A program made the position numbers and the translations under genes. Positions 8,475-59,710 of a DNA stretch of 64,000 nt are shown piece after piece. The DNA lies in assembly GCA_964247055.1 (NCBI GenBank), contig OZ176057.1, positions 4,402,001-4,466,000 of the forward strand. The letters are read 5' to 3'. The DNA is from Paragordius varius. Lineage: Eukaryota; Animalia; Nematomorpha. The notes under the pieces were generated by a model, which was not told the DNA's origin, ran no database searches, and saw only the letters and a list, made by a program, of their open reading frames with translations. Numbering within the stretch: the stretch's first letter is position 1; every line of letters begins with the position of its first letter.

Positions 8475-8775
8475 TACCATTTACAATTCAAATTCACCCT
8501 TGAACAATTCAAATTCACCCCGAACAATTCAAAAGAAACCCTAAAAATAAATTATAAATTTTCGGGCTAATATAACTTAACATTAAAATATAATATATCT
8601 TTATGGGTTTATTATTTTTTCAGTAATATTTGAATTTAAAACCAAATTTTATTTATTTATATATAAAAAATATAGATAATTTTTATTCTTAAAAAACACA
8701 TAATATATTTTAGGGTGAATTCGAATTGTATGAGGGTGAATTTGAATGTTTTAAGGGTGAATGAATTGTAAATTA
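8475..8775. mobile_element. Family F MITE: TA|TACCATTT terminus with 21-bp subterminal units (TTGAACAATTCAAATTCACCC)
   Basis: Left arm tataccatttacaattcaaattcacccttgaacaattcaaattcacccc; inverted right arm gggtgaatttgaatg...gaattgtaaattata; a further right-arm fragment at ~8900-8970. Confidence 0.75.
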
Positions 8776-9858
8776 TATATTTTGCCTAAAAATGTAAGGT
8801 TTTATTGAAACATTCATATTTTGAGGGATGATAGAACCGAAATCAAAACGCTTTTAAAAAGGGGTGTCTAACACACGGCCCGAGGGTGGCTTTAATCTTA
8901 AAAAACACATGATTTATTTTAGGGTGAATTTGAATTGTTCGGTGATTTTGAATTGCTCAAGGGTGAATGAAAAATTTGGAAATAAATTAATTATCAAAAA
9001 GGCACAAGAAATAAAATTGATACTTTTTAAACAATTTTTCTAAATAAGTCTATAAATTGGCAAGAATTAGAATATTGTGTTTTTTACTTTATATTTGAAA
9101 TCTAATGAATTATCCATGTAAGCCCACATATATTTCGAAGGCAGCCTGACAGATTGTTTTAAATTTAAAAGGGCGATTCGCGAAGCCATTTTTATTGGAC
9201 ATCTCTGGTTTGTTTTGTAAAAAAATATTTTTTAATCCAATAATGCTGAACATTTTTAGCACCGGAGAATTTTGATTCAAAATTCTTTGCCTAATGTTTG
9301 ACAAATTTTTATTTACAATTAACCAAATAAGCATAAGAGCCTTTATTCGGAGATGGAAATGTTTAGCATCCTCCAATAATATAAATGTCTTAAAGCGTTT
9401 TCATACCGTTTTTTATCATGTTTCAAAATATATGAATTTTTCAAAAAAGATTTTAATGGTTTGTATGAATTGACATAAAATATTTAAATATAATTTAGTA
9501 ATAATAAAGTATATCCATCCCGGTAATTTGGTTACCAAAGTTTTAAATGAGTTTATATATATATATATTTAAAGTTATTTTTTTTGATGAAAACAAAATG
9601 AAAAATATCGATATCAAAAACATTTGTGTCTCAGAATGATGGTAAGAATATTATTGAATTTATTAAAGTCGATATCTTTTAGTGTATTTTTATCTGAAAA
9701 GTATCCAACAATATTTTAAGATTTTGGGCCTATGAATAACACAGTATACAAAATTAGGGATAATGAAAAACAAATCTGGATAAAATATATTCTGATAGAA
9801 TGTATAAGGATTATCATGGTGCTTTTGATTTTGACCTTTACGAATATTAGAATATTAA

Positions 9859-22948: not shown

Positions 22949-23508
22949 ATACCACTTTCAAGAGTCTTGAATACTTCGAGTTGGTCACTGAACATTTCAA
23001 GTTTGTCTTTGTACACTTCAATTGTTCCTTGAACACTTTAAGTTATTCCTTATAATTAAGTTTGGATTTAACCATAAATTTTGCCTGAATTTAGATAATT
23101 ATTTTTTTAATTTTATGGTATTATATATTTATTCATGTAAAACCTATATTTTTTATAACACTATTTTGTTTTTTCAAACTATTTTTTTTCAACTTAACAA
23201 TATTAATCAATTTTAAATGTTATTAATAAAAAATTGTAATTGATAACCCATAAATCTTATAATTCCGATTATCTTATTTTAATATATTTTTTAGAAAATG
23301 AAGATATAAGGTTTTCTAATGATTTAAAATAAATATTGATTTAAAATTTATGTAAAATAAATAAAATAGGTTATAAATGATAAAACAGATGAATGATCAC
23401 GATTAGATTAATAAGCGTTAAAAAAAATAAAATGTTCAAGGATGTGTAAGGTCCAATTTAAAATGTTTAAGGACCAACTTCAAGGACACTCTTGAGGTGC
23501 AAAGGTAT
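22949..23508. mobile_element. Family E MITE (21-bp-array TIRs), old diverged copy
   Basis: Degenerate ttgaacanttcaagttggtcc units on the left; aaggaccaactt...ggacactcttgaggtgcaaaggta on the right; shared AT-rich core. Confidence 0.75.
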
Positions 23509-25800: not shown

Positions 25801-25828
<28 letters not shown>

Positions 25829-25834
<6 letters not shown>

Positions 25835-28089
25835 CCCAGTCTAAATAAACGTTTTTTCAGTCAATTGAATTCCCAGTCAATCGAAACGTTTTCCCAGTCA
25901 ATCGAAACGTTTTCCCAGTCAATAAAAACGTTTTCCCGGTCAATAACGTTTTCCCAGTCAATAAAAACGTTTTCCCTCAATAAAAACGTTTTCCCAGTCA
26001 ATAAAAACGGTTCTATTTTTGATAATAAACATTAAAACAAGATACAAAAATAACTTTTAACCATTATCAGCGTGATATTAGGATATTATTTTGCAAAAAA
26101 ACACAATTATTGAATGACAATTTTTCCCATATAGTCCACTAAACAATCTTTAATGACTTATTTTTTAAAAGTTGAACTATTACTGTACAAATATACTTGA
26201 ATAAATCAATCATTGTTTCATTTTATTAGAGAGACAAATTGAGATAATATATTAAAAAATGATTTCATTTATTGTATATGTTATAAAAAGATCACATATT
26301 TGATAAACCGGCTGCCGCCTTTACCATATTTGTCATTATCTTTTCAGAATAATTTCTGCTATCCTCCGATGTTATGGAGCCCGCTGCCAATTTTATCAGA
26401 TTCAATTTCACAATCGCATTCATATTATTTAATATAATATTTTGTCGGACAAAATTTTTTTTTTTGAAAATGCCATTTCGATTGGGTTCAACATATAACT
26501 GTGCGAGGACCAAAAATCAATTTTGTATTTGTATAAATCGGCTCTACCTTTTAATTCATTTTTTTATGAATGCGTACATTGTCCATAATAAAATGATATT
26601 AAATATCGTCGCGCTTTAAATATTCACAAAGTCCATCAAAAAAACTTGTAAAGCGTTGGGAATTGACTGTTCTTTGGCTTTCTATTTAGTAATAAAACAT
26701 ACCTCTTAATGACAGAGCTCCAATAAAAGTGATGTTTCTGCCTTTTACGCTAGGCACCTCAATATTGGCTCTCGTGCCACTTTTGGATCGACCTTGGCTT
26801 CTTCTAATATGGTTATTATAACCGCATTCATCCAAATAAATAATATTTGTTAAGTCATCGGAGAAAGATTGTGAAAACCATATTGCGTATTTTTTCCTTA
26901 AATCTATTATTTGAGCATTGACTTTTTCATTAAGATGATGGGCTAACTTCGAAGTTATTCTTAAAGATTTGATAACTCGGTCTATAGATGATTTAGATAA
27001 TTTTATTTTTTTTATCTTTTTTTTCCGTATTTAGTGCCTCTACGAGTTAGAATTTCTGAACTATTATTTTATTTATTTAGACATAATTTGACGAGCAGTA
27101 TTATAGTTTATATCTAAATCCTTTGATACATCCACAGTCCATTCTCCATCAAAAAAAACTCGTTTTACTAATCGCTTCCTATCTCGTTGAGATATAACTA
27201 ATCTTGATTCCTCTTTCTGACATAACTAAAATATTACTAAATAAAATGAACCTTATATAGATAATTTGATGTATGCAAATAAAAAAATTATTGATATTTC
27301 AACGTAAGGTTTTTATCCAATAAATTTAAAGCAGACGAGAAAATAATGATATAATATTTATAATTACAATATTGCACACCAGATAGTCACAGAAAAGGTT
27401 AACAACTCGTTATCTAAAATTTAATCGCTGCATTGGATATAAGTAATCAGATTATATACCATTTGCATTTCAGGTTAGCCCTTAAACATTAAAATTTCAT
27501 ACTTAAACATCTCAAATTAACATAAACTTGCGTACCATGATATTATGTATTCGTATTTTATCCGATATATTTTTTCATTAAAATCAACTTTTCCATCGTA
27601 AAATTATTTTTTTAAACAGTATTTTGATCAAGGACATAGTTGAAAGGTTTCCTTTTTGATTGTAAAGAGTTGAAAATACATTTAAATTTTATAATTCAAT
27701 CCGAAACTATAGATATTTTAGGTTAGCCCCGAATATTAATGCGAACGATTAATAAAATAAATAAATTATTAGTTTTCTAAAAATATTTCAAAAACCATCA
27801 AATACTCATCCAGCTAATAAAATATAGCTTTCAAAGATAAGCTAAAGATTGTGTAGTGGAATATATGGGAAAAATTGTCATTCAATAATTGTGTTTTTTT
27901 GCAAAATAATATCCTAATGTCACGCTGATAATGGTTAAAAGTTATTTTTGTATCTTGTTTCGATATTTATTATCAAAAATAAAACCGTTTTTATTGACTG
28001 GGAAAACGTTTTTATTGACTGGGAAAACGTTTCGATTGACTGGAAAAATGTTTCGATTGACTAACGTTTATTTAGACTGGGAAATGGCA
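25829..28089 (-). mobile_element. IS630/Tc1-type transposon with ~250-310-bp TIRs containing 21-bp arrays (Family G)
   Basis: Inverted arms ~25831-26145 and ~27843-28089; unit TTTTCCCAGTCAATAAAAACG repeated about 7-8 times on the left and 4-5 on the right; right terminus reads TA|TGCCATTTCCCAG on the minus strand; left end runs into (TA)n. Confidence 0.88.
26292..27223 (-). pseudogene. IS630/Tc1-like DD34E transposase, frameshifted
   Basis: RLVISQRDRKRLVKRVFFDGE..DLDINYNTARQI, LSKSSIDRVIKSLRIT, IIYLDECGYNNHIRRSQGRSKSGTRA, KGRNITFIGALS, HFIMDNVRIH, SYMLNPIEMAFSK. There are 101 nt between the second D and the E, i.e. DD34E with a 1-nt loss. Confidence 0.9.
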
Positions 28090-28093
28090 TATA

Positions 28094-28773
28094 TACCATT
28101 TGCACTTCAAGAGTGTCCTTGAACATTTCAAGTTGGTCCTTGAACAATTCAAGTGGTCCTTGAACAGTTCAAGTTGGTCCTTGAACAGTTCAAGTTGGTC
28201 CTTGAACATTTCAAGTTGGTCCTTGAACACTTCAAGTTGGTCCTTTGACTTTTTTGTTTTGTTTTAAACTTTTATCAATCAAATCGTAAATAATTCATCT
28301 ATTTTATTATTTTTAACCTATTTTTTATTATTTAACATAAATTTTGAATCGATACCTACTTTTAATCTTTGAGAAACCGTATATTTTTATTAATTTCTTA
28401 AAATAATTTTGGATATTTATAATATTTTAACACGAAATGAAAAAATATATAAGTTTTCTGGGTTATTAATTAAAAATTTTTATTAAAAACATTTAAAAGT
28501 CAATAATTTTGTTCAATTGAAAAAAATAGGTTGAAATAAAAAAAGTGGTTTTTCAATAAAAAAATTTATTTTTAAATGAATAAATATATAATATCTAAAG
28601 AAAATTAGGTTAATAAATAATAAAATAAAAAAATAAGTGCAAAAATTATGGTTAAATAAAATTTATAAATTATAAGGACCAACTTGAAGTAAGGACCAAC
28701 TTGAATTGTTCAAGGACCAACTTGAATTGTTCCAGGACCAACTTGAATTGGACACTCTTGAAGTGTAAATGGT
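28094..28773. mobile_element. Family E MITE, abutting the Family G transposon
   Basis: TA|TACCATTTGCACTTCAAGAGTGTCC, 6 left and about 4 right 21-bp units, ends GTGTAAATGGT. Confidence 0.9.
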
Positions 28774-29420
28774 TACCATTTGCACTTCAAGATTGTCCTT
28801 GAACACTTCAAGTTGGTCCTTGAACAGTTCAAGTTGGTCCTTGAACAATTCAAGTTGGTCCTTGAACACTTCAAGTTGGTCCTTTGACTTTTTTGTTTTT
28901 TTTTAACTTTTATCAATCAAATCGTAAATAATTCATTTATTTTATTGTTTTTAACCTATTTTCTATTATTTAACATAAATTTTAAATCGATATTAACTTA
29001 AATTCTTTGAGAAACCGTATATCTTTATTAATTTCTTAAAATAATTTCGGATATTTATAAGATTTTAACACGAAATGAAAAAATATATAAGTTTTTTGGG
29101 TTATTAATTTAAATTTTTCATTAAAAACATTTAAAAGACAATAATTTTGTAGAATTGAAAAAAAATAGTTTGAAATTAAAAAGTGGTTTTTCAAAAAAAA
29201 AGTTTATTTTTAAATGAATAAATATATAATAAATAAAGAAAATTAGGCTTAAATAATGAAATAAAAAAATAAATGCAAAAATTATGGTTAAATCAAAATT
29301 TATAAATTTTAAAGACCAACTTGAAGTGTTTAAGGACCAACTTGAATTGTTCAAGGACCAACTTGAATTGTTCAAGGACCAACTTGAACTGTTCAAGACA
29401 CTCTTGAAGTGCAAATGGTA
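28774..29420. mobile_element. Family E MITE, head-to-tail tandem with the previous copy
   Basis: TACCATTTGCACTTCAAG...CTTGAAGTGCAAATGGTA|TA; 4 left and 4 right units; core near-identical to 28094-28773. Confidence 0.9.
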
Positions 29421-29823
29421 TATATGATTTATGAGTGTGTATAAGGATCTCCTGATACTGCATTTATTAGATTTTTAGTTATTTTTTGATTTTAAAATTA
29501 AGCTTAAATGCGTATAAATAATAAAAATTAAATTTTCAAATTTAATTGGAAAGTTTTTATTAAAAATACAACGAACTCGGATGTATTAAGGTAATTAACT
29601 AAATACAAACATCAAAATATTCGTATTAGAAAAAATCACCTTTTAAAATATTATAAAAGGGCAGAGATTATGATAGGTGAGATCGATTGTGTTATACAAT
29701 GGAATAATATTAAATTAATTTATATATAATAATTCTAAAATAGGACAGCACTAGACTATCGTCCCTATTGAATGATGCATTGTGTTTTTTAATTTCTATG
29801 ATTCGCGTATAAGACGCTTGTTA

Positions 29824-30092
29824 TCATGTTCTATTTTTGTTGTTATGACCTTGATGTCGGCTATGTAGCGTTTTACATTGACAAACGTCTTCATAGAGAC
29901 CCGAATCGGGTATCGTTAATCGGATGTATCCAGAATGTTCTCGTAAAAGAACGTTTTCATCTCCTTTTCCGCAGACAGTTTCACTGGATATCGCTAGCTA
30001 AAACCATTATATTTATTTTATAAATTTAACTTGCATATTTGACATGAAATATCACACCGTATAACTTGATTTAAACAGACGATAGTTTTCAT
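29824..30092 (-). other. Candidate CUB-like gene fragment, head-to-head with the transposase
   Basis: After a ttttag acceptor (30000-29998) an open frame reads LAISSETVCGKGDENVLLREHSGYIRLTIPDSGLYEDVCQCKTLHSRHQG; a possible first exon MKTIVCLNQ|gt has its ATG at 30092-30090. Resemblance to the start of a CUB domain is by eye only. Confidence 0.3.
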
Positions 30093-30118
30093 GTTTTTTA
30101 AAAAAATCGTCTGTTTAA
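30071..30118. promoter_or_regulatory. 13-bp perfect inverted repeat upstream of the transposase start
   Basis: TTAAACAGACGAT-N22-ATCGTCTGTTTAA, 25 nt before the ATG at 30144. Regulatory role is inferred. Confidence 0.55.
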
Positions 30119-30143
30119 CTAATTTATATTTCCAAAAAATAAA

Positions 30144-31151
30144 ATGAGTATTATTTTATTTTATATTTTAGATTCTAGGAAGTATTCTAAATTATCTGAT
30201 CAAAATAAAAAACGACTTATAAAGAGTGTTATTATAGAAGGTGAAAATATAATAAATATGGCACGCTCTCTAGAAAATATACTACTGCCAAACGTATCAT
30301 TAGTAAATACAAACAAAATCTAAATGAAAACACAAATCATGGAGGAAATATAAAAAGGTTGATGATAGTATTGTTGCCCTTATTGAAGGCCAAATTACCA
30401 TAAATCCACTCATAACACTAAAATCACTAAATTGTTTTTTAGTTGAAAAAAATATCCGCCTTTCTAATGCAACTATTAATAATGTTATTAGAAAGCTTGG
30501 CATTACAATGAAACAAACTCATATTGAAATTGATAAGGTTAACAATCCTTTAAGTTTAATTAAACGAAAAGAATACGCCCTTTGGTTAAATGAAACCTTT
30601 GGCTGCGACTATTCCAAAATAGTGTTCATAGATGAGTCAGGATTCCATAACCATTTAAGAAGAAACTATGGAAGGTCTAAGAAGGGAACCAGAGCGATTG
30701 CAAAGTTGTTAAACTTTAAAGGAAGAAACGTTACTTTGATAGCAGCTCTAGGTTCGGCTGGAATAGTGTACTCACATATAGAGTCGGAAAGAAATGTTAA
30801 TGCTAATATTTTTGCAAATTTTTTTCAGAATCTCTGTATACATCTCAACTCATCTAATTTGGAAGATATTCATTTTATTTTGGATAACGCAAAAATTCAT
30901 AATAGAAATTCATTAAATAATATTGCCGCCATTTATTCCTTTTTATTTCTATCTCCATACAGTTTTATGCTAAATCCTATTGAAAATGCATTTTCCAAAA
31001 TCAAAAATTATGTTTGCCACATGTTATCAAGTCCGAGTTAATTTTAGAAGCCTCTAAAGCTATCACAGAATCTGATGTGATAGGATATACAAAATTGTTA
31101 ACTAAGAATCTAATTAATGCAGCATCAGGAAATCCTTATACTCATAAATAA
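30144..31151 (+). pseudogene. IS630/Tc1-like DDE transposase with a putative 24-nt intron and frameshifts; the catalytic core ORF 30508-31041 is still open
   Basis: ATG A|gt..24 nt..ag|AT gives MNSRKYSKLSDQNKKRLIKSVIIEGE (HTH region); then LSNATINNVIRKLGITMK, IVFIDESGF, HFILDNAKIH, LSPYSFMLNPIENAFSKIK (D-32-E in this copy); the C-terminus ..LINAASGNPYTHK* is in a shifted frame. Homologous along its length to 26292-27223. Confidence 0.92.
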
Positions 31152-31357
31152 TCATATATTTATATTTGTGATTATTCTATAATATACAATAAATATATTT
31201 TATGAAAAATTAAATAAATGTTGGTTATTTCAAATATTTCTGATTATTTTACACTAAATAGGTTCATAATTTATAAAAATTAAATTAGGATAATCAAAAT
31301 TACTATTGCAAATAACAATAATAACCTAAAATTTAATAAAATATAAAAAAAATATTT

Positions 31358-31825
31358 AATTTAAATGGTTTAGAGTTTTTGGCATAGTTACAAATTCAAG
31401 GACCAACTTGAATTGATCAAGGACCAACTTGAATTGTTCAAGGACCAACTTGATATGTTCAAGGACCAACTTGAAATGTTCAAGGACCAACTTGAATTGT
31501 TCAAGGACGAACTTGAATTGTTCAAGGACCAACTTGAACTGTTCAAGGACCAACTTGAATTGTTCAAGGACACTCTTGAAGTGTAAATGGTATATTAAAT
31601 TTAAATGGTTTAGAGTTTTTGGCATAGTTACAAATTCAAGGACCAACTTGAATTGTTCAAGGACCAACTTGAAATGTTCAAGGACCAACTTGAATTGTTC
31701 AAGGACCAATTTGAATTGTTCAAGGACCAACTTGAACTGCTCAAGGACCAACTTGAACTGTTCAAGGACCAACTTGAACTGTTCAAGGACCAACTTGAAT
31801 TGAAGGACACTCTTGAAGTGTAAAT

Positions 31826-31829
<4 letters not shown>
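31358..31829. repeat. Tandemly duplicated right TIR (2 x ~240 bp), each with 8 Family E 21-bp units
   Basis: Copies begin at ~31358 and ~31598; unit AAGGACCAACTTGAAxTGTTC; each copy ends GGACACTCTTGAAGTGTAAATGGTA. Confidence 0.92.

Positions 31830-31894
<65 letters not shown>
31828..31894. repeat. (TA)n microsatellite, the longest in the window
   Basis: Pure TA tract directly after the TIR terminus. Other tracts at about 12446-12495, 25805-25830, 39887-39921, 43753-43793, 51813-51836, 52411-52444, 55297-55329, 59107-59130 and 63692-63729. Confidence 0.97.
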
Positions 31895-42348: not shown

Positions 42349-42858
42349 TACCATTTGCACTTTAAGAGAGTCCTTAAAGATTGCAAGTTGATTCTTGAAT
42401 ACTTCAACTAGGTCCTTAACCACGTCAAATTGGTCGTTTGACTTTTTTGTTTTGTTTTTAACTTTGATTTCATCTATTTTATCGTTTTTAACCTATTTTC
42501 TAATATTTAACATAAATTAAAATCCATAGCAACTTTCTAGAATATTTATTTGATTACATAATTAAAAAATAAGTTTTCTGGGTCATTATTTACATTTTTC
42601 ATTGAAAACATTTAAAAGTTAATATTTTGTTGAATTGAAAAAAAATAGTAACAAAAAAGTGGTTTTTGAATAAAAAATTTTATTTTTTAATTTATATGAT
42701 ATATAAAGAATATAATTTAAAAAATAATAAATTAAACTATATGCAAAAATTATGGTTAAATCAAAATTTAAAAATTTTAAAGACCAGAAGTGCTCATGAA
42801 CTTGCAGTATTCAAGGACCGACTTGAAATCTTCAAGGACACTCTTGTAGTACAAAGAT
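42349..42858. mobile_element. Family E MITE, diverged
   Basis: TA|TACCATTTGCACTTTAAGAG...TCAAGGACACTCTTGTAGTACAAAG; degenerate 21-bp units and shared core. Confidence 0.8.
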
Positions 42859-43749
42859 ATTTACAATTTAATAGCTCAAAATCATATAGATAGGGTTTAA
42901 ATAAAAACTCATAACAAATCGCGGCTACTTGAACGACAAAAAAATTAATGTAACTATATTATAGGTTATTTTAATTATTTACTAGCTAATCTCAAAAATC
43001 TTAACATTCATATGTACATTAAAACAAATTTATATAAAAAAAATAAAAATTATTGTTTTTTATTTTTCATTTTTTGTTGGTTTAAAAAATTCACTGTTTT
43101 ATTTTGGAATCCTACATAAGCGGGATTCATAAATTATTACAAAAGAAAGAAAGTGGTAAAAAATTAATCAAAATCCTACATCAAAAAAAATATATGTGTT
43201 AGACAACTTGTTACAAGGTACGGATTGTTAGTTGAGTATGGTACTTTTTCGTATTTTGCATATATTTATAAAATTTATTCCCGCTCATGTAAGATTTCAT
43301 AACAGTATAAATTTTTTATACACAAAATATTTTTTGGGTTTTATATTGATATGTAAGTTTTTTTTACTAAATAAATGAATGTTAAAATATTAATATTGAG
43401 TTAAGTTAGTAAATAAAATTAAAAAAATTATTTTAATATGTTCACTAAAAATTTTGTCTTTTAAGTATGTTAAAAAGATAACCCGATTTTTTAATCTGGG
43501 TTTTAATTAACACCCTAACTATATAATTTTAGCTATCAATATATTGATAATATCATAATCATAATATCTCAGGTTTTATCATTATTTTTTTAATTATCCT
43601 TGATTTTCACTTTTTTCCCAATTTTGATTTTCTCTTCATATTAAAAAACTAAGTCGCCAAAAAATAAAAATTTTAGCTGCAAATAAATTCGCTGTTAAGC
43701 TATCTCATGAAAATTTTTTTTTAAAATATTAATTCTCTTTTTGCACACA

Positions 43750-46915: not shown

Positions 46916-47992
46916 TACCATTTGCTCCTAAAAGTGTATCTGGGTCTTTTAACATATTAAATTGGTCCTTAATCACTTCAAGTTGGTCCCTGAATACAGG
47001 TTGTCGTTTGACTTTTTTGTTTTATTTTTAACTTTTATCAATCAAATCGTATATTATTTATCTATTTTATTTTTTTAACCTATTTTTTGTGTAACATAAA
47101 TATTAAATCAATATCAACTTTTAATCGTTATCATTATCTAAATTATTTAGGATATTTATAAGATTTTAACATGTAATAAATAAATATATAAGTTTTCTGA
47201 ATTAAAAATTCCATTTTTTCAATAAAAACATTTATATGGTAATAATTTTGTTAAATTGGTAAGTTTGATACAAAAAAATGGTTTTTCATTAGCACTTGGT
47301 TAAAACACATTTATTTTAGTCCTTCAATTCAAATTGGGGCAGTTGAATACAAGCCTGTTCAAAATTAAATTCTTTAAAAATATGGAAGGAATCGAAACCA
47401 TGGCAATATTTTGCACTTATATAACATTCATAAACCGGAATATATAAAAAAATTTATTCAAAGATACTTGATATTAGTTATTTTAAGCTAAAACCTAAAG
47501 GTAAAATTTGGTCAACGTGACATGTGTGCAATGGTAAAATTGAAAAATAATACAAAATAAACGTCTTTTTCTATTTCTATCAATGTTAGATGTAATTTAA
47601 ATAAATTAGCTTTAATTTTACCCTTAAAATTAAATGAAGACGATATTTTGCAAAAATTTTATAAAATGAAAATGGCGTCGAAGTAGTTTGACATGAAACT
47701 TTTTTTCCAAAACAAAATTTAGATAAATTAACATATTTATATAATTTTTATTAGGATAGCAGCATTTAAATTGGGACCGTTTCATTTAGTAGTTTTTATA
47801 AAATCATAACTCAAGTTTAGTCTGGGGTATTTGGATGCCCCAAGAATCAAAGTGTTAAAAAATTTATTTTAAAGAAAATAGGTTAAAAAAATAAATAATT
47901 GTAGAAATTATGGTTAAATCCAAACTTAATTTTTGGACTGAAATCTTTAAAAACCAACTTGAAGTGTTCAATACTTTTAAAATGCAAATCAA
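46916..47992. mobile_element. Family E MITE interrupted by a Family A MITE
   Basis: TA|TACCATTTGCTCC left end; the E core resumes after 47854 and ends ..aaccaacttgaagtgttca..aaatgcaaat. Confidence 0.75.
47293..47854 (-). mobile_element. Family A piggyBac-like MITE, reverse orientation
   Basis: CACTTGGTTAAAACAC...AATCAAAGTG|TTAA; reverse-complement homologue of 44744-45261. Confidence 0.85.
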
Positions 47993-51465: not shown

Positions 51466-51834
51466 GTAATGTTTTATCATATTATTTGTCATATATATAA
51501 TAATTTTTTAAAAGAAACAAGATAATTAGCAGAGCTAAAGATTATAATTAAAATAAACAATAGTTGCAAAATAATGATTTTTGGTTTTTGGGAAAAATTA
51601 TTTAAGTGAATAAATATAGCATTTTATAAATTGCCATTTGTCATAGGATATATTCTTAAACACAGAAGGTTATTTCAAGCATTTCAGCTGTAGGAAAGAA
51701 TGTTAAAAGATAAATATCATATAATACACCATTTTTACAAGCACACTTTTTGACCAAACGCGACATTTTTTCAAGTTAAATCGTTGAAAAAGTGTTGATA
51801 TTGGCTAAAAATTATATATATATATATATATATA

Positions 51835-52408
51835 TACTATTTGCACTTCAAGAGTGTCCTTGAACAATTCAAGTTGGTCCTTGAACAATTCAAGGTGGTC
51901 CATGAACATTACAAGTTGGTCCTTGAACACTTTAAGTTGGTCCTTTAACTTTTTTATTTTGTTTTTAACTTTTATTAATCAAATCGTAAATAATTCATCT
52001 ATTTTATTGTATTTAACCTATTTTTATTTAACATAAATTTTTAATTGATATCATCTTTTAATCTCTGAGAACCGTATATCTTTATTAAATTCTCATAATA
52101 ATTTTGGATGTTTATAAGATTTTAACACGAAATGAAAAATATATAAGTTTTCTGGGTTATTAATTAAAATTTTTTATTAAAAACATTTGAAAGTTAAAAA
52201 TTTTGTTCAATTGAAAAAAAATAGTTTAAAACAAAAAAATTGTTTTTCAATATAATTTTTTATTTTTAAATGAATAAATATATAGTAAATAAAGAAATTA
52301 GGTTAAATAATAAAATATAAAAATAAATGCAAAAATTATGGTTAAATCAAAATTTATAAATTTTAAGGACCAACTTGAAGTGTTCAAGGACACTTTTGAA
52401 GTGCAAAT

Positions 52409-52412
<4 letters not shown>
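51835..52412. mobile_element. Family E MITE embedded in (TA)n
   Basis: (TA)n|TACTATTTGCACTTCAAG...GAAGTGCAAATGGTA|(TA)n; 4 left units and 1 right unit. Confidence 0.92.
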
Positions 52413-52447
<35 letters not shown>

Positions 52448-57133: not shown

Positions 57134-59128
57134 TATAAAATTTTGAAATATCAAAAGAGGCGATTTGTTGGTGTCCAAAACAAAAGGAGTAGTACCGGGC
57201 TATTATGTTCTGTTGCCATGTATAAGGGACATTCAACCAGTGTAAAGACAGCTTAAGGGTCATGGTTTTGAATTAAAACAGCGACTATTATAAATCTGTT
57301 TAATATTTATAAGTGTGTAAAGGAAGATAGTTAGATTTTTATGTGTGCCCTATGATCTTACTCTCATATCTGAAAGTTTGGACTTATTTAAAAAATGGAT
57401 CTTTGAAAAGTTGTATTGCGGTTTGATGAATAATTATAAAAGAGCGTTTGTAGCTTTCGGCGTCAATTTAACGTATTTTGATTTAGGACATAATTCATAA
57501 AAGAGTAAATTAAATTGTTATTTGAGTACGATGTTGAGCAAACTATTAGACGTGAATGCTCAAAATAGAGAGATCACTATTATGGTAAATAAGCGATAGC
57601 ATGCTGTTCGTTATTATTTTTTATGAATTTTTATACTATCTTAATTGAATAACAAAAATTGCAATAAATGAACTAAGCGAATATTTCCATGTTTTTGCCA
57701 CAACTAGGGTGACTGTATATTAATAGAATTGTTTAACTTCAAATACATATAATTTATTACCATACCTTTAACCGAATAAATATTATTTGGATCGAATGCT
57801 GTATCTTTTAGTTTTAAATTATTTATTTTAAATTTTTTTTTGAAATCGTATAATATGGGAAAGTCGTTGCGAAGCTTAAAAAATTAAAGACTTTAAACCA
57901 AATGTTATCAGTAAAAATCAAAATAATATAATATTTAATAGTTGTAAAGTAAATATTGATCCCAGTTTAATGATTAGCTATTAAATTAAACGTAAAAATG
58001 CGCACGGTATCGATTATGGCGATTTTTTTATAAAATCTTTGCTTTGATATTTAAACTTTAGCGAATTTCGTTGAAGCGTTTTATGTTGGAAACGGTATTT
58101 GGGTTTTTTAAATAATCATTAAAAAGTTACCTATAAAAGCAAACAAATCTTCACATCCAAGTGAACAGATATATATACAAAGGTGATTTTAATATTAAAG
58201 TGTTATACCGACACCATGCCCCAAATTGCCCTAAAATACAGTTCAACAAAAAAGTTTAAGCCGATGCATTTTTTTAATCATCATGTTTTTTGTTAGAATC
58301 TAGCTCATATTAAAAATTCTTATCGTCCAATCACGGCATTTTTGTGTTTATTTTAAGAAAACTTATTTCAAAAAAATTATAAGCGGTTGATATGTGCAAA
58401 TTTCGGGATTTTTTCATATGACAATTTTAACTAAGTGATAACGGCTTTTTTTAAAAACTCGTTTGCCAAAAGCACTATAAAAATTTACTCTGAAAATAAA
58501 ATGTGTAATGCGATAAGCTATCAAAGCTAAAGCTTAACTAATTTTCAGAAATCATTCTCTAAAGTGCAAACGGTTAACAACTCAAATTATATATTATATA
58601 TATAAATCTAATTAAATTTTAGAGGAAGCCGAGCAACGTAATTTTACATTTGATTAAATATTGTATCCAATTTTGAAAATGCAATTTTCATGATTTAAAC
58701 GCTAGATTCAAAAAAAGTAGATTGAAAAAAAAATACCTCAAACCTTTTCATCTCCCTTTTTGTTTTTTTAAATTGTAAACAACAGGCTAATAATATATGC
58801 ATGGTAAACAACTTACATAACTTTTTAGAAAGCATTTACATTAAAACATCAATTTTGAAATCATTGATTTTACTAACAATTATTTGTATTAATCGGCTAC
58901 CCAATTTTGGAATGTAAAAATTTGAAAATACTCTTTATGACCATTAATAAAGGATGTTGTGATTTAATTTTTACAAATATAAGTACTGAGCCAGCCCCAA
59001 AATATAGTCATCTACAAAAAAAATTTTAATTGAAATGAACTGTAAATAATTTTGATTGATAATTTTAGGATAGAATTATTGGCATACGTTAATATATTTA
59101 ATATATTATATATATATATATATATATA

Positions 59129-59710
59129 TACTATTTGCACTTCAAGAGTGTCCTTGAACACTTCAAGTTGGTCCTTTGACTTTTTTTGTTTTGTTTTTAA
59201 CTTTTAACAATCAAATCGTAAAGTTTTATTGTTTTTTACATATTTTCTATTATTTAACATAATTTTTAATCGATATCAACTTTTAATCTTTGAGAAACCG
59301 TATATCTTTATTAATTTCTTAAAATAATTTAGGATATTTATAAGATTTTAACGCGAAATGAAAAAATATATAAGTTTTCTGGGCTATTAATTAAATTTTT
59401 CAATAAAAACACTTAAAAGTCAATAATTCCATTCAATAAAAAATAGTTTGAAACATAGTTTTTAAATAAAAATTTTTATTTTTAAATGAATAAATATATA
59501 ATAAATAAAAAAATTAGGATAAATAATAAAATAAAAAATAAATGCAAAAATTATGGTTAAATCAAAATTTATAAATTTTAAGGATTAACTTGAAGTGTTC
59601 AAGGACCAACTTAAATTGTTAAGGACCAACTTGAATTGATCAAGGACCAACATGAACTGTTTAAGGACCAACTTGAAGTGTTCAAGGACACTCTTGAAGT
59701 GCAAATGGTA
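59129..59710. mobile_element. Family E MITE embedded in (TA)n
   Basis: (TA)n|TACTATTTGCACTTCAAG...CTTGAAGTGCAAATGGTA|TATA; 1 left unit and 5 right units. Confidence 0.92.

Follow-up and report, generated by a model that had tools for sequence, protein, structure and literature searches.

Variable-number arrays of 21-bp units at the ends of IS630/Tc1/mariner-type elements in Paragordius varius

The stretch of DNA analysed here (64,000 nucleotides of contig OZ176057.1, positions 4,402,001 to 4,466,000 of the forward strand, GenBank assembly GCA_964247055.1; hereafter the window, whose numbering is used throughout) originates from the nematomorph Paragordius varius. It contains two homologous transposase pseudogenes and several non-coding elements, the ends of which are composed of tandem 21-bp units. 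Three unit types, named E, F and G, and ends of the form TA followed by T(A/G)C(C/T)ATTT had been predicted from the letters, and both were confirmed by direct reading of every copy. The G+C content of the window is 22-34% throughout. It is matched by the 26.9% G+C of the horsehair worm Gordionus montsenyensis, for whose genome 63.8% repeats, mostly DNA transposons, have been published on the basis of automated repeat masking only.

Within the region 25829-31894, which harbors both genes, Tandem Repeats Finder (TRF) disclosed 21-bp arrays at 25870-26009, 27982-28062, 28115-28245 and 28674-28750, as well as at 28783-28884, 29308-29411, 31395-31571 and 31635-31802. Outside of this region, arrays of the same period were located at 8483-8533, 8712-8770, 22967-23044, 51847-51949 and 59580-59701. 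In pattern searches of the window, the E/F unit was matched 50 times (0.25 expected), the G unit nine times (0.05 expected) and the E terminus 12 times (0 expected). At least nine elements possess inverted ends, in which the TA-flanked T(A/G)C(C/T)ATTT terminus is followed by contiguous 21-bp units (Table 1). As anticipated by the original prediction, the number of units per end varied from one to eight and was unequal between the two ends of one element. The terminal unit of the E type is itself a diverged internal unit, with which it shares 16 out of 23 positions.

Table 1. Elements with 21-bp unit arrays, and parts of such elements, in the window (MITE, miniature inverted-repeat transposable element; TIR, terminal inverted repeat; HTH, helix-turn-helix)
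Feature	Position	Strand	Description
F MITE, ~300 bp	8475..8775	+	left end TA followed by TACCATTTACAATTCAAATTCACCC plus 2 units; right end 3 units, eroded terminus
F solo right-end fragment	8896-8970	as F MITE	beside F MITE
E MITE, old, opposite orientation	22950..23507	-	4 and 2 decayed units; core 78% to consensus
G element, complete, dead, autonomous size 2.26 kb	25831..28093	-	inverted ends = array + ~150 bp unique TIR
G array, 3' side of gene	25831..26009	+	terminal-type unit + 8 internal units; TRF period 21, 6.9 copies, 88% matches
G-linked DDE_3 transposase pseudogene	26292..27240	-	in-frame stops, frame breaks, deletion between two HTH parts (three-frame translation)
G array, 5' side of gene	27982..28093	-	terminus TA followed by TGCCATTTCCCAGTCTAAATAAACG + 4 internal units; TRF period 21, 3.9 copies
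E MITE 1, non-coding	28094..28773	+	left terminus + 6 units; right terminus + ~3.5 units; core 94% to consensus
E MITE 2	28774..29420	+	4 units each end; core 95% to consensus; abuts MITE 1
E-linked autonomous remnant	30000..31594	+	pseudogene ~30144-31151, 3' non-coding stretch, right end = 8 units + terminus GGACACTCTTGAAGTGTAAATGGTA followed by TA
Second tandem E right-end module	31595..31831	+	40 bp subterminal, ~8 units, terminus, then (TA)33; 95% identical to 31356-31594
E MITE, older	42349..42859	+	~3 decayed units per end; 90% to consensus
E MITE, old, ~560-bp insertion (47290-47845)	46916..47990	+	84% to consensus
E MITE, (TA)n on both flanks	51835..52412	+	4 units left, 1 right; 94% to consensus
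E MITE	59129..59710	+	1 unit left, 5 right; 94% to consensus

The inverted arms of the G element (25977-26152 and 27843-28018) are complementary at 96% over 176 nt, and Pfam DDE_3 is matched at 0.011 by the largest piece of its gene (49 aa). The element opens 5' of the gene with TA followed by TGCCATTTCCCAG... and four units; the 3' end repeats the order of the unit variants and possesses four extra units. The internal units of the 3' array have the sequence TTTTCCCAGTCAAT(AA/CG)AAACG, some of them being shortened, and (AT)14 has taken the place of the final ~5 nt of the terminus at position 25831. Expressed in unit variants, the left end equals the right end plus one CG-type and three AA-type units. 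The difference between the two ends of G is a gain or loss of whole units. A fourth flavour of units was detected inside of G at 27457-27530, where TA followed by TACCATTTGCATTTCAGGTTAGCCC precedes TTAAACATTAAAATTTCATAC-type units. For this end no inverted partner was found, and it is probably the solo end of another subfamily.

The gene associated with the E units contains an open reading frame of 177 aa (30508-31041) that matches DDE_3 (PF13358) at 4.1e-23. For the searches described below, the stop-free stretch of 237 aa at 30328-31038, which contains this reading frame, served as query. Three-frame translation disclosed at least three frame breaks in the E gene, and 32 residues lie between the second D and the E of its catalytic triad, which is a loss of two residues compared to the usual 34. 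The N-terminal HTH region of the window transposases is still recognisable, though frame-broken. A left array is absent from the E copy. Its right-end module of 237 bp is present twice in tandem with 95% identity (31356-31831), and the junction of the two modules shares TAAATGGT with internal sequence, which hints at a microhomology-mediated duplication or at one-ended events.

We also compared the contigs of four public sequencing runs with positions 29420-31395. The E family is multi-copy in these data, 146 pieces of many variants being found in one run. Other copies carry four extra letters after 30274 and after 30347, i.e. at the first two frame-break sites, and extra sequence at ~31031. 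Thus, the E gene copy of the window belongs to a larger family, of which it is a decayed representative. Micro-introns were considered as a cause of the frame breaks and rejected, as the breaks are short frame-shifting indels and the run contigs carry the four additional letters at both sites. Upstream of ~30000 the other copies continue with a different sequence resembling a degenerate E unit, which suggests that the left array was lost in the window copy. A search for a left subterminal inverted repeat of the E copy revealed weak AT-rich matches only. In the public runs, the segment separating MITE 2 from the E transposase (29420-30000) also occurs in high copy number; it is another repeat and may have displaced the left end. 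Taken together, the prediction of two homologous DDE genes attached to arrays held with respect to homology and the DDE_3 domain; both genes turned out to be pseudogenes, and that of E has kept its right end only.

Seven E MITEs reside in the window (511-1075 bp), each comprising the terminus plus one to six units per end, unequally distributed between the ends, and a unique core of 350-430 bp. They share terminus and units with the end beside the E transposase. Core identity to the family consensus amounts to 94-95% in four copies and to 90, 84 and 78% in three older ones. The arrays of the inserted MITEs decay alongside their cores, as would follow from selection being exerted on transposition alone. 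Instead of the three MITE subfamilies originally proposed, only two were encountered, E with seven copies and F with one copy and a fragment, G being represented by a single full-length dead element. MITE 1 and MITE 2 are joined head-to-tail at 28773-28776 (AAATGG-TTA-CCATTT), a junction lacking one letter compared with that expected had one element inserted cleanly into the other's terminal TA. The right-end modules of F (8690-8970) occur twice in direct orientation, approximately 120 bp apart. Furthermore, (TA)n microsatellites adjoin many element ends (25804-25831, 31828-31894, 51813-51836, 52411-52444 and 59092-59130); either TA-targeting elements prefer (TA)n, or the TA-TA junction seeds slippage.

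To the variation among units a single position contributes most. Among 52 E units there are 84 non-majority letters, 31 of which are located at position 8 (A 21, C 14, T 8, G 9), while each of the other positions accounts for none to six. Most of the variation had been ascribed to the 3-nt spacer of a dyad, and this description has to be replaced by one of a single variable position. The two right-end copies of E differ mostly at position 8, and these differences largely vanish when one array is shifted by two units. Thus, position 8 marks old unit variants which were shuffled by gain or loss of whole units, the other 20 positions having stayed nearly constant. A hypermutable position 8 is disfavoured by the same two-unit shift, which removes most of the differences. 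The dyad itself was dismissed as a feature of the family: over 23 unit types the best arm averaged 4.5 nt, as in shuffled sequences, and only the E unit reached P = 0.044 in the shuffle test.

The assignment of the elements to a DD34E lineage of the IS630/Tc1/mariner (ITm) type was corroborated by the DDE_3 matches of both genes and by the DD34E spacing of their relatives. A word-based protein search yielded 108 relatives, the best of which belong to Strongyloides papillosus (47%) and to the microsporidia Cucumispora and Dictyocoela; many are metagenome or Sequence Read Archive (SRA) proteins of 330-390 aa. The intact homologues combine a PAX/paired-like N-terminus with DDE_3 (domains PAX PF00292, HTH_28 and HTH_Tnp_Tc3_2) and display the bipartite paired-like HTH of the ITm superfamily. 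In the homologue P0001, 34 residues separate the second D from the E, and the same stretch aligns in other intact homologues. E and G are mutual nearest relatives (41% identity) and form sisters within the clade of relatives (Shimodaira-Hasegawa-like approximate likelihood ratio test, SH-aLRT, 93). A profile built from 17 members gave its best match in the Protein Data Bank (PDB) with the paired domain of Pax6 (4e-5), followed by the catalytic domain of SB100X (2.8e-4) and by Mos1 (4.7e-4). As SB100X and Mos1 were matched about equally, the lineage lies inside the superfamily and not obviously inside Tc1 proper.

To see how related elements end, we analyzed 30 eukaryotic loci, eight of which are distinct relatives identified by exact protein look-up and 22 are metagenome loci covering most of the protein. 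The remaining 58 of the 80 loci taken from metagenome contigs are mostly bacterial and IS630-like. Tandem units of 20-22 bp flank the transposase gene in 20 of the 30 eukaryotic loci compared to two of the 58 remaining ones, and the 21-bp repeats of these two are G+C-rich and without paired inverted positions. On the tree, each of the three subclades of the 32-row eukaryotic clade, which is adjacent to the bacterial group, includes array-bearing loci. Among the 22 metagenome loci, 15 showed arrays outside the gene, with a period of 20 (one), 21 (eleven) or 22 bp (three), and in at least ten of these both flanks carry arrays, oriented inversely to each other and reaching up to ~8-12 units.

The structure of individual ends resembled that in the window. 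Locus L001 ends in TA followed by TACCATTTCC..., its terminus reading TA followed by TACCATTTCCACGTCGATTTCAACA, and has two units at one end and one at the other, a second 21-bp unit thus being present on one side only. In L004, the gene of which is intact (364 aa), the two sides yielded minimum counts of 4.5 and 2.2 units, the short-read contig breaking inside both arrays; for L008 the corresponding minima are 3.7 and 2. The units of L002 are F-like, and the Dictyocoela locus (L003) contains 5.8 units of 21 bp. L005 starts with TA followed by CACCATTT, succeeded by three diverged 20-21-bp repeats that do not form a TRF array, and clear arrays were not found in L006/L007 and L009. Longer arrays are present in L036 (7.7 and 7.8 units) and L037 (4.8 and 5.9 units). 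Unequal unit numbers at the two ends are common in the relatives (L001, L010, L014, L037). Direct reading revealed that L010, L012, L014 and L036 end in TA followed by TACCATTT. As to a strictly Tc1-like terminus, CCATTT is found in the E/G subclade, whereas the distant array-bearing loci L017, L037 and L075 (28-29% identity) end in TA followed by CAG(T/G/A)G, the classical Tc1-type terminus. As expected for a TA target-site duplication, the E MITEs, F and G as well as L001, L005, L010, L014 and L036 are bordered by TA on either side. The supposed constancy of period and terminus was borne out for the period, as 21 bp recurs with differing units (20 or 22 bp in a few), and for CCATTT only in the closer relatives.

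Some further observations were made on these loci. In L002, three telomere-like TTAGGG repeats are situated between the transposase gene and the right array (1535-1552). At the contig end beside the related element, L015 contains a second, unrelated 21-bp array (1873-2116; 11.6 copies, 63-bp higher order), possibly the terminus of an adjacent element from a different family. At least 14 array-ended families (L010-L015, L017, L028, L037, L040, L041, L054, L071 and L075) were recovered from one metagenome (contig prefix Ga0307474), which seems to contain a single AT-rich eukaryote rich in such families with intact genes.

Whether the units are subject to selection can be read from L001, L004 and L010. 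Their units are 76-86% identical (z 2.7-4.4 versus shuffles), although the proteins share only ~53-63% of their residues. The spacers between array and start codon (94-147 bp) of the same loci are as dissimilar as shuffled sequences (51-55%, z below 1). Conservation of the units next to randomised spacers means that the units are under purifying selection. As judged from the sequences, they are selected cis-elements and most plausibly phased binding sites of the paired-like domain. The suggestion that the unit sequence co-evolves with the transposase found partial backing, as close transposases carry similar units, which fits selected sites diverging with the protein.

In our interpretation, the elements are cut-and-paste transposons of a deep DD34E branch of IS630/Tc1/mariner, accompanied by MITEs, and their ends carry selected, putatively transposase-bound units; we give this reading as a whole a probability of about 65%. 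Each end consists of a cleavage-proximal terminal unit (TA, T(A/G)C(C/T)ATTT...) and, directly after it, a variable number of 21-bp direct repeats that have diverged from it; one unit would correspond to one binding site for the bipartite paired-like (PAI+RED) domain of the transposase. Since 21 bp equal two helical turns, the bound proteins would align along the same side of the double helix. The array may recruit transposase and help to pair the two ends, similar to the multiple sites of Tc1-like elements with inverted repeat/direct repeat (IR/DR) ends, of Mu or of Tn7, and only the outermost unit with the CCATTT motif would be cut. The unit number changes by whole units, gained and lost presumably by way of slippage, unequal exchange or the misaligned repair of gaps left by excision. 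The terminus and one unit per end, the minimum in inserted copies, are apparently enough for movement.

Several points weigh against this interpretation. TRF detected no tandem array in ten of the 30 related loci, several of which lie on contigs of insufficient length for a judgement. The link between E transposase and E array is an adjacency at one end only, and some run contigs leave the window sequence just before this array (~31355-31362). A constant unit length is also expected from simple descent without indels. The MITEs at 51835-52412 and 59129-59710, which have a single internal unit at one end, were evidently inserted, so that extra units are dispensable for mobility. Moreover, the family may already bear a name as a curated entry in Repbase or Dfam. 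Our search, which covered papers but not Repbase or Dfam, met with no published ITm lineage whose ends are contiguous unit arrays of variable number.

The mobility of ends with a single internal unit would also agree with the assumption that only the terminal unit is functional and that the internal units are neutral minisatellite expansions, generated by slippage in an AT-rich, repeat-prone genome. The unit number, free from one to eight, and the decay of arrays together with the MITE core after insertion are compatible with it. However, related genes from numerous other organisms and samples are likewise bordered by arrays with this period, internal units have been kept between elements with ~40% protein difference while neighbouring non-coding DNA was randomised, and the variation of the E unit is confined to one of 21 positions. 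Neutral expansion is thus unlikely in our opinion. The selection observed on the units is silent about their function, and with 100-300 bp separating the gene from the array on either side they might instead act as a transposase sink that damps activity, as promoter or enhancer of the transposase gene or, given that transcripts of inverted arrays would fold into a long hairpin, as a source of hairpin RNA feeding silencing. Such roles appear quite improbable, though, as MITEs devoid of a gene keep their arrays and the stretch was present in none of the RNA runs among the public runs. The arrays, moreover, are always placed directly against the cleavage terminus, the terminal unit being a copy of the unit as in known transposase-binding repeats. 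An assembly artefact or chance repeats have a probability close to nil: short-read contigs of relatives do break inside arrays, but the pattern counts are far above those of shuffled sequences, at least nine separate TA-flanked copies exist in the window, and the same end layout was found in independent assemblies of relatives.

Beyond selected, transposase-bound units, a more far-reaching scenario can be put forward tentatively. The elements might represent a deep, unnamed eukaryotic ITm branch, in which an expandable row of phased 21-22-bp sites, in place of the usual one to three end sites, supports the assembly of a transposase multimer, the length of the row tunes the mobility of an element or its MITEs, and the arrays seed 21-bp satellites of the host genome. 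The multimer would line up on the row in a beads-on-a-string manner, as at the ends of Tn7 and Mu, and the length would be reset by each round of slippage or gap repair. The lineage offers a natural series of ends with one to 12 phased sites, including intact elements on single contigs (L036, L037, L013). This series permits a direct test of the influence of site number and spacing on synapsis, excision and self-regulation, and might give rise to new transposon tools with tunable ends.

Well-studied Tc1/mariner elements have one to three transposase sites per end, in fixed number, and the reason for the IR/DR layout is debated. The IR/DR elements Sleeping Beauty, Minos, Paris and Bari3 are similar to those described here in their TA target, DD34E triad, bipartite paired-like domain and long inverted ends. 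They likewise possess more than one transposase-binding direct repeat per end, the outer repeat being a variant of the inner one. The ends of Mu and Tn7 also contain several transposase sites of ~22 bp, partly contiguous and unequal between left and right, of which only the outermost is beside the cut. Mu and Tn7 differ in their proteins, which are unrelated at family level (MuA and TnsB being of retroviral-integrase type with other DNA-binding domains), in their invariable number of sites and in their bacterial hosts. In Sleeping Beauty, the IR/DR layout enforces pairing of the ends before cleavage (PMC5224488), and Bari3 has three repeats per end (PMC4120734, PMC8834629). While the repeats of Tc1-like IR/DR elements are spaced and fixed at two or three per end (PMC5224488, PMC4120734), the units found here are contiguous with a 21-bp period and vary from one to at least eight between copies and ends, which places the elements outside of the IR/DR subgroup with its fixed number of spacer-separated repeats. 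The transposase profile is no closer to Sleeping Beauty than to Mos1, and the terminus reads CCATTT rather than CAGTG. Stowaway-like and other Tc1/mariner MITEs are non-coding, 300-680 bp long, flanked by TA duplications and share their ends with a transposase-bearing partner (PMC3814204), as is the case here. They usually have short simple inverted repeats, in place of which the MITEs of the window carry unit arrays.

Variable-number tandem repeats in inverted ends are known from Galileo (P superfamily) and from the foldback elements FB, Tetris and Tm1. In Galileo, they carry extra binding sites for the transposase (THAP) (PMC3688188), and inverted-end repeats of this kind can seed satellites (PMC4079207). 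Foldback elements, among them Tm1 of root-knot nematodes, are mostly of the Mutator type (PMC4079207, PMC3169594). They differ from the elements of the window in superfamily (P, Mutator; PMC3169594), in their longer units (~220 bp in Tetris) and in that the ends make up most of the element. The arrays of the window account for at most ~150 of ~600 bp per end, the MITEs keep their unique core, and the linked enzyme is of the ITm type. The elements are thus not foldback elements, and the term foldback-like, applied to them in the original prediction, is loose. According to PMC4079207, which cites Marzo et al. 2008, different superfamilies are believed to have acquired foldback architecture independently of one another. 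If the term is used in its loose sense, ITm would be a third superfamily, after Mutator and P, in which such an architecture has originated.

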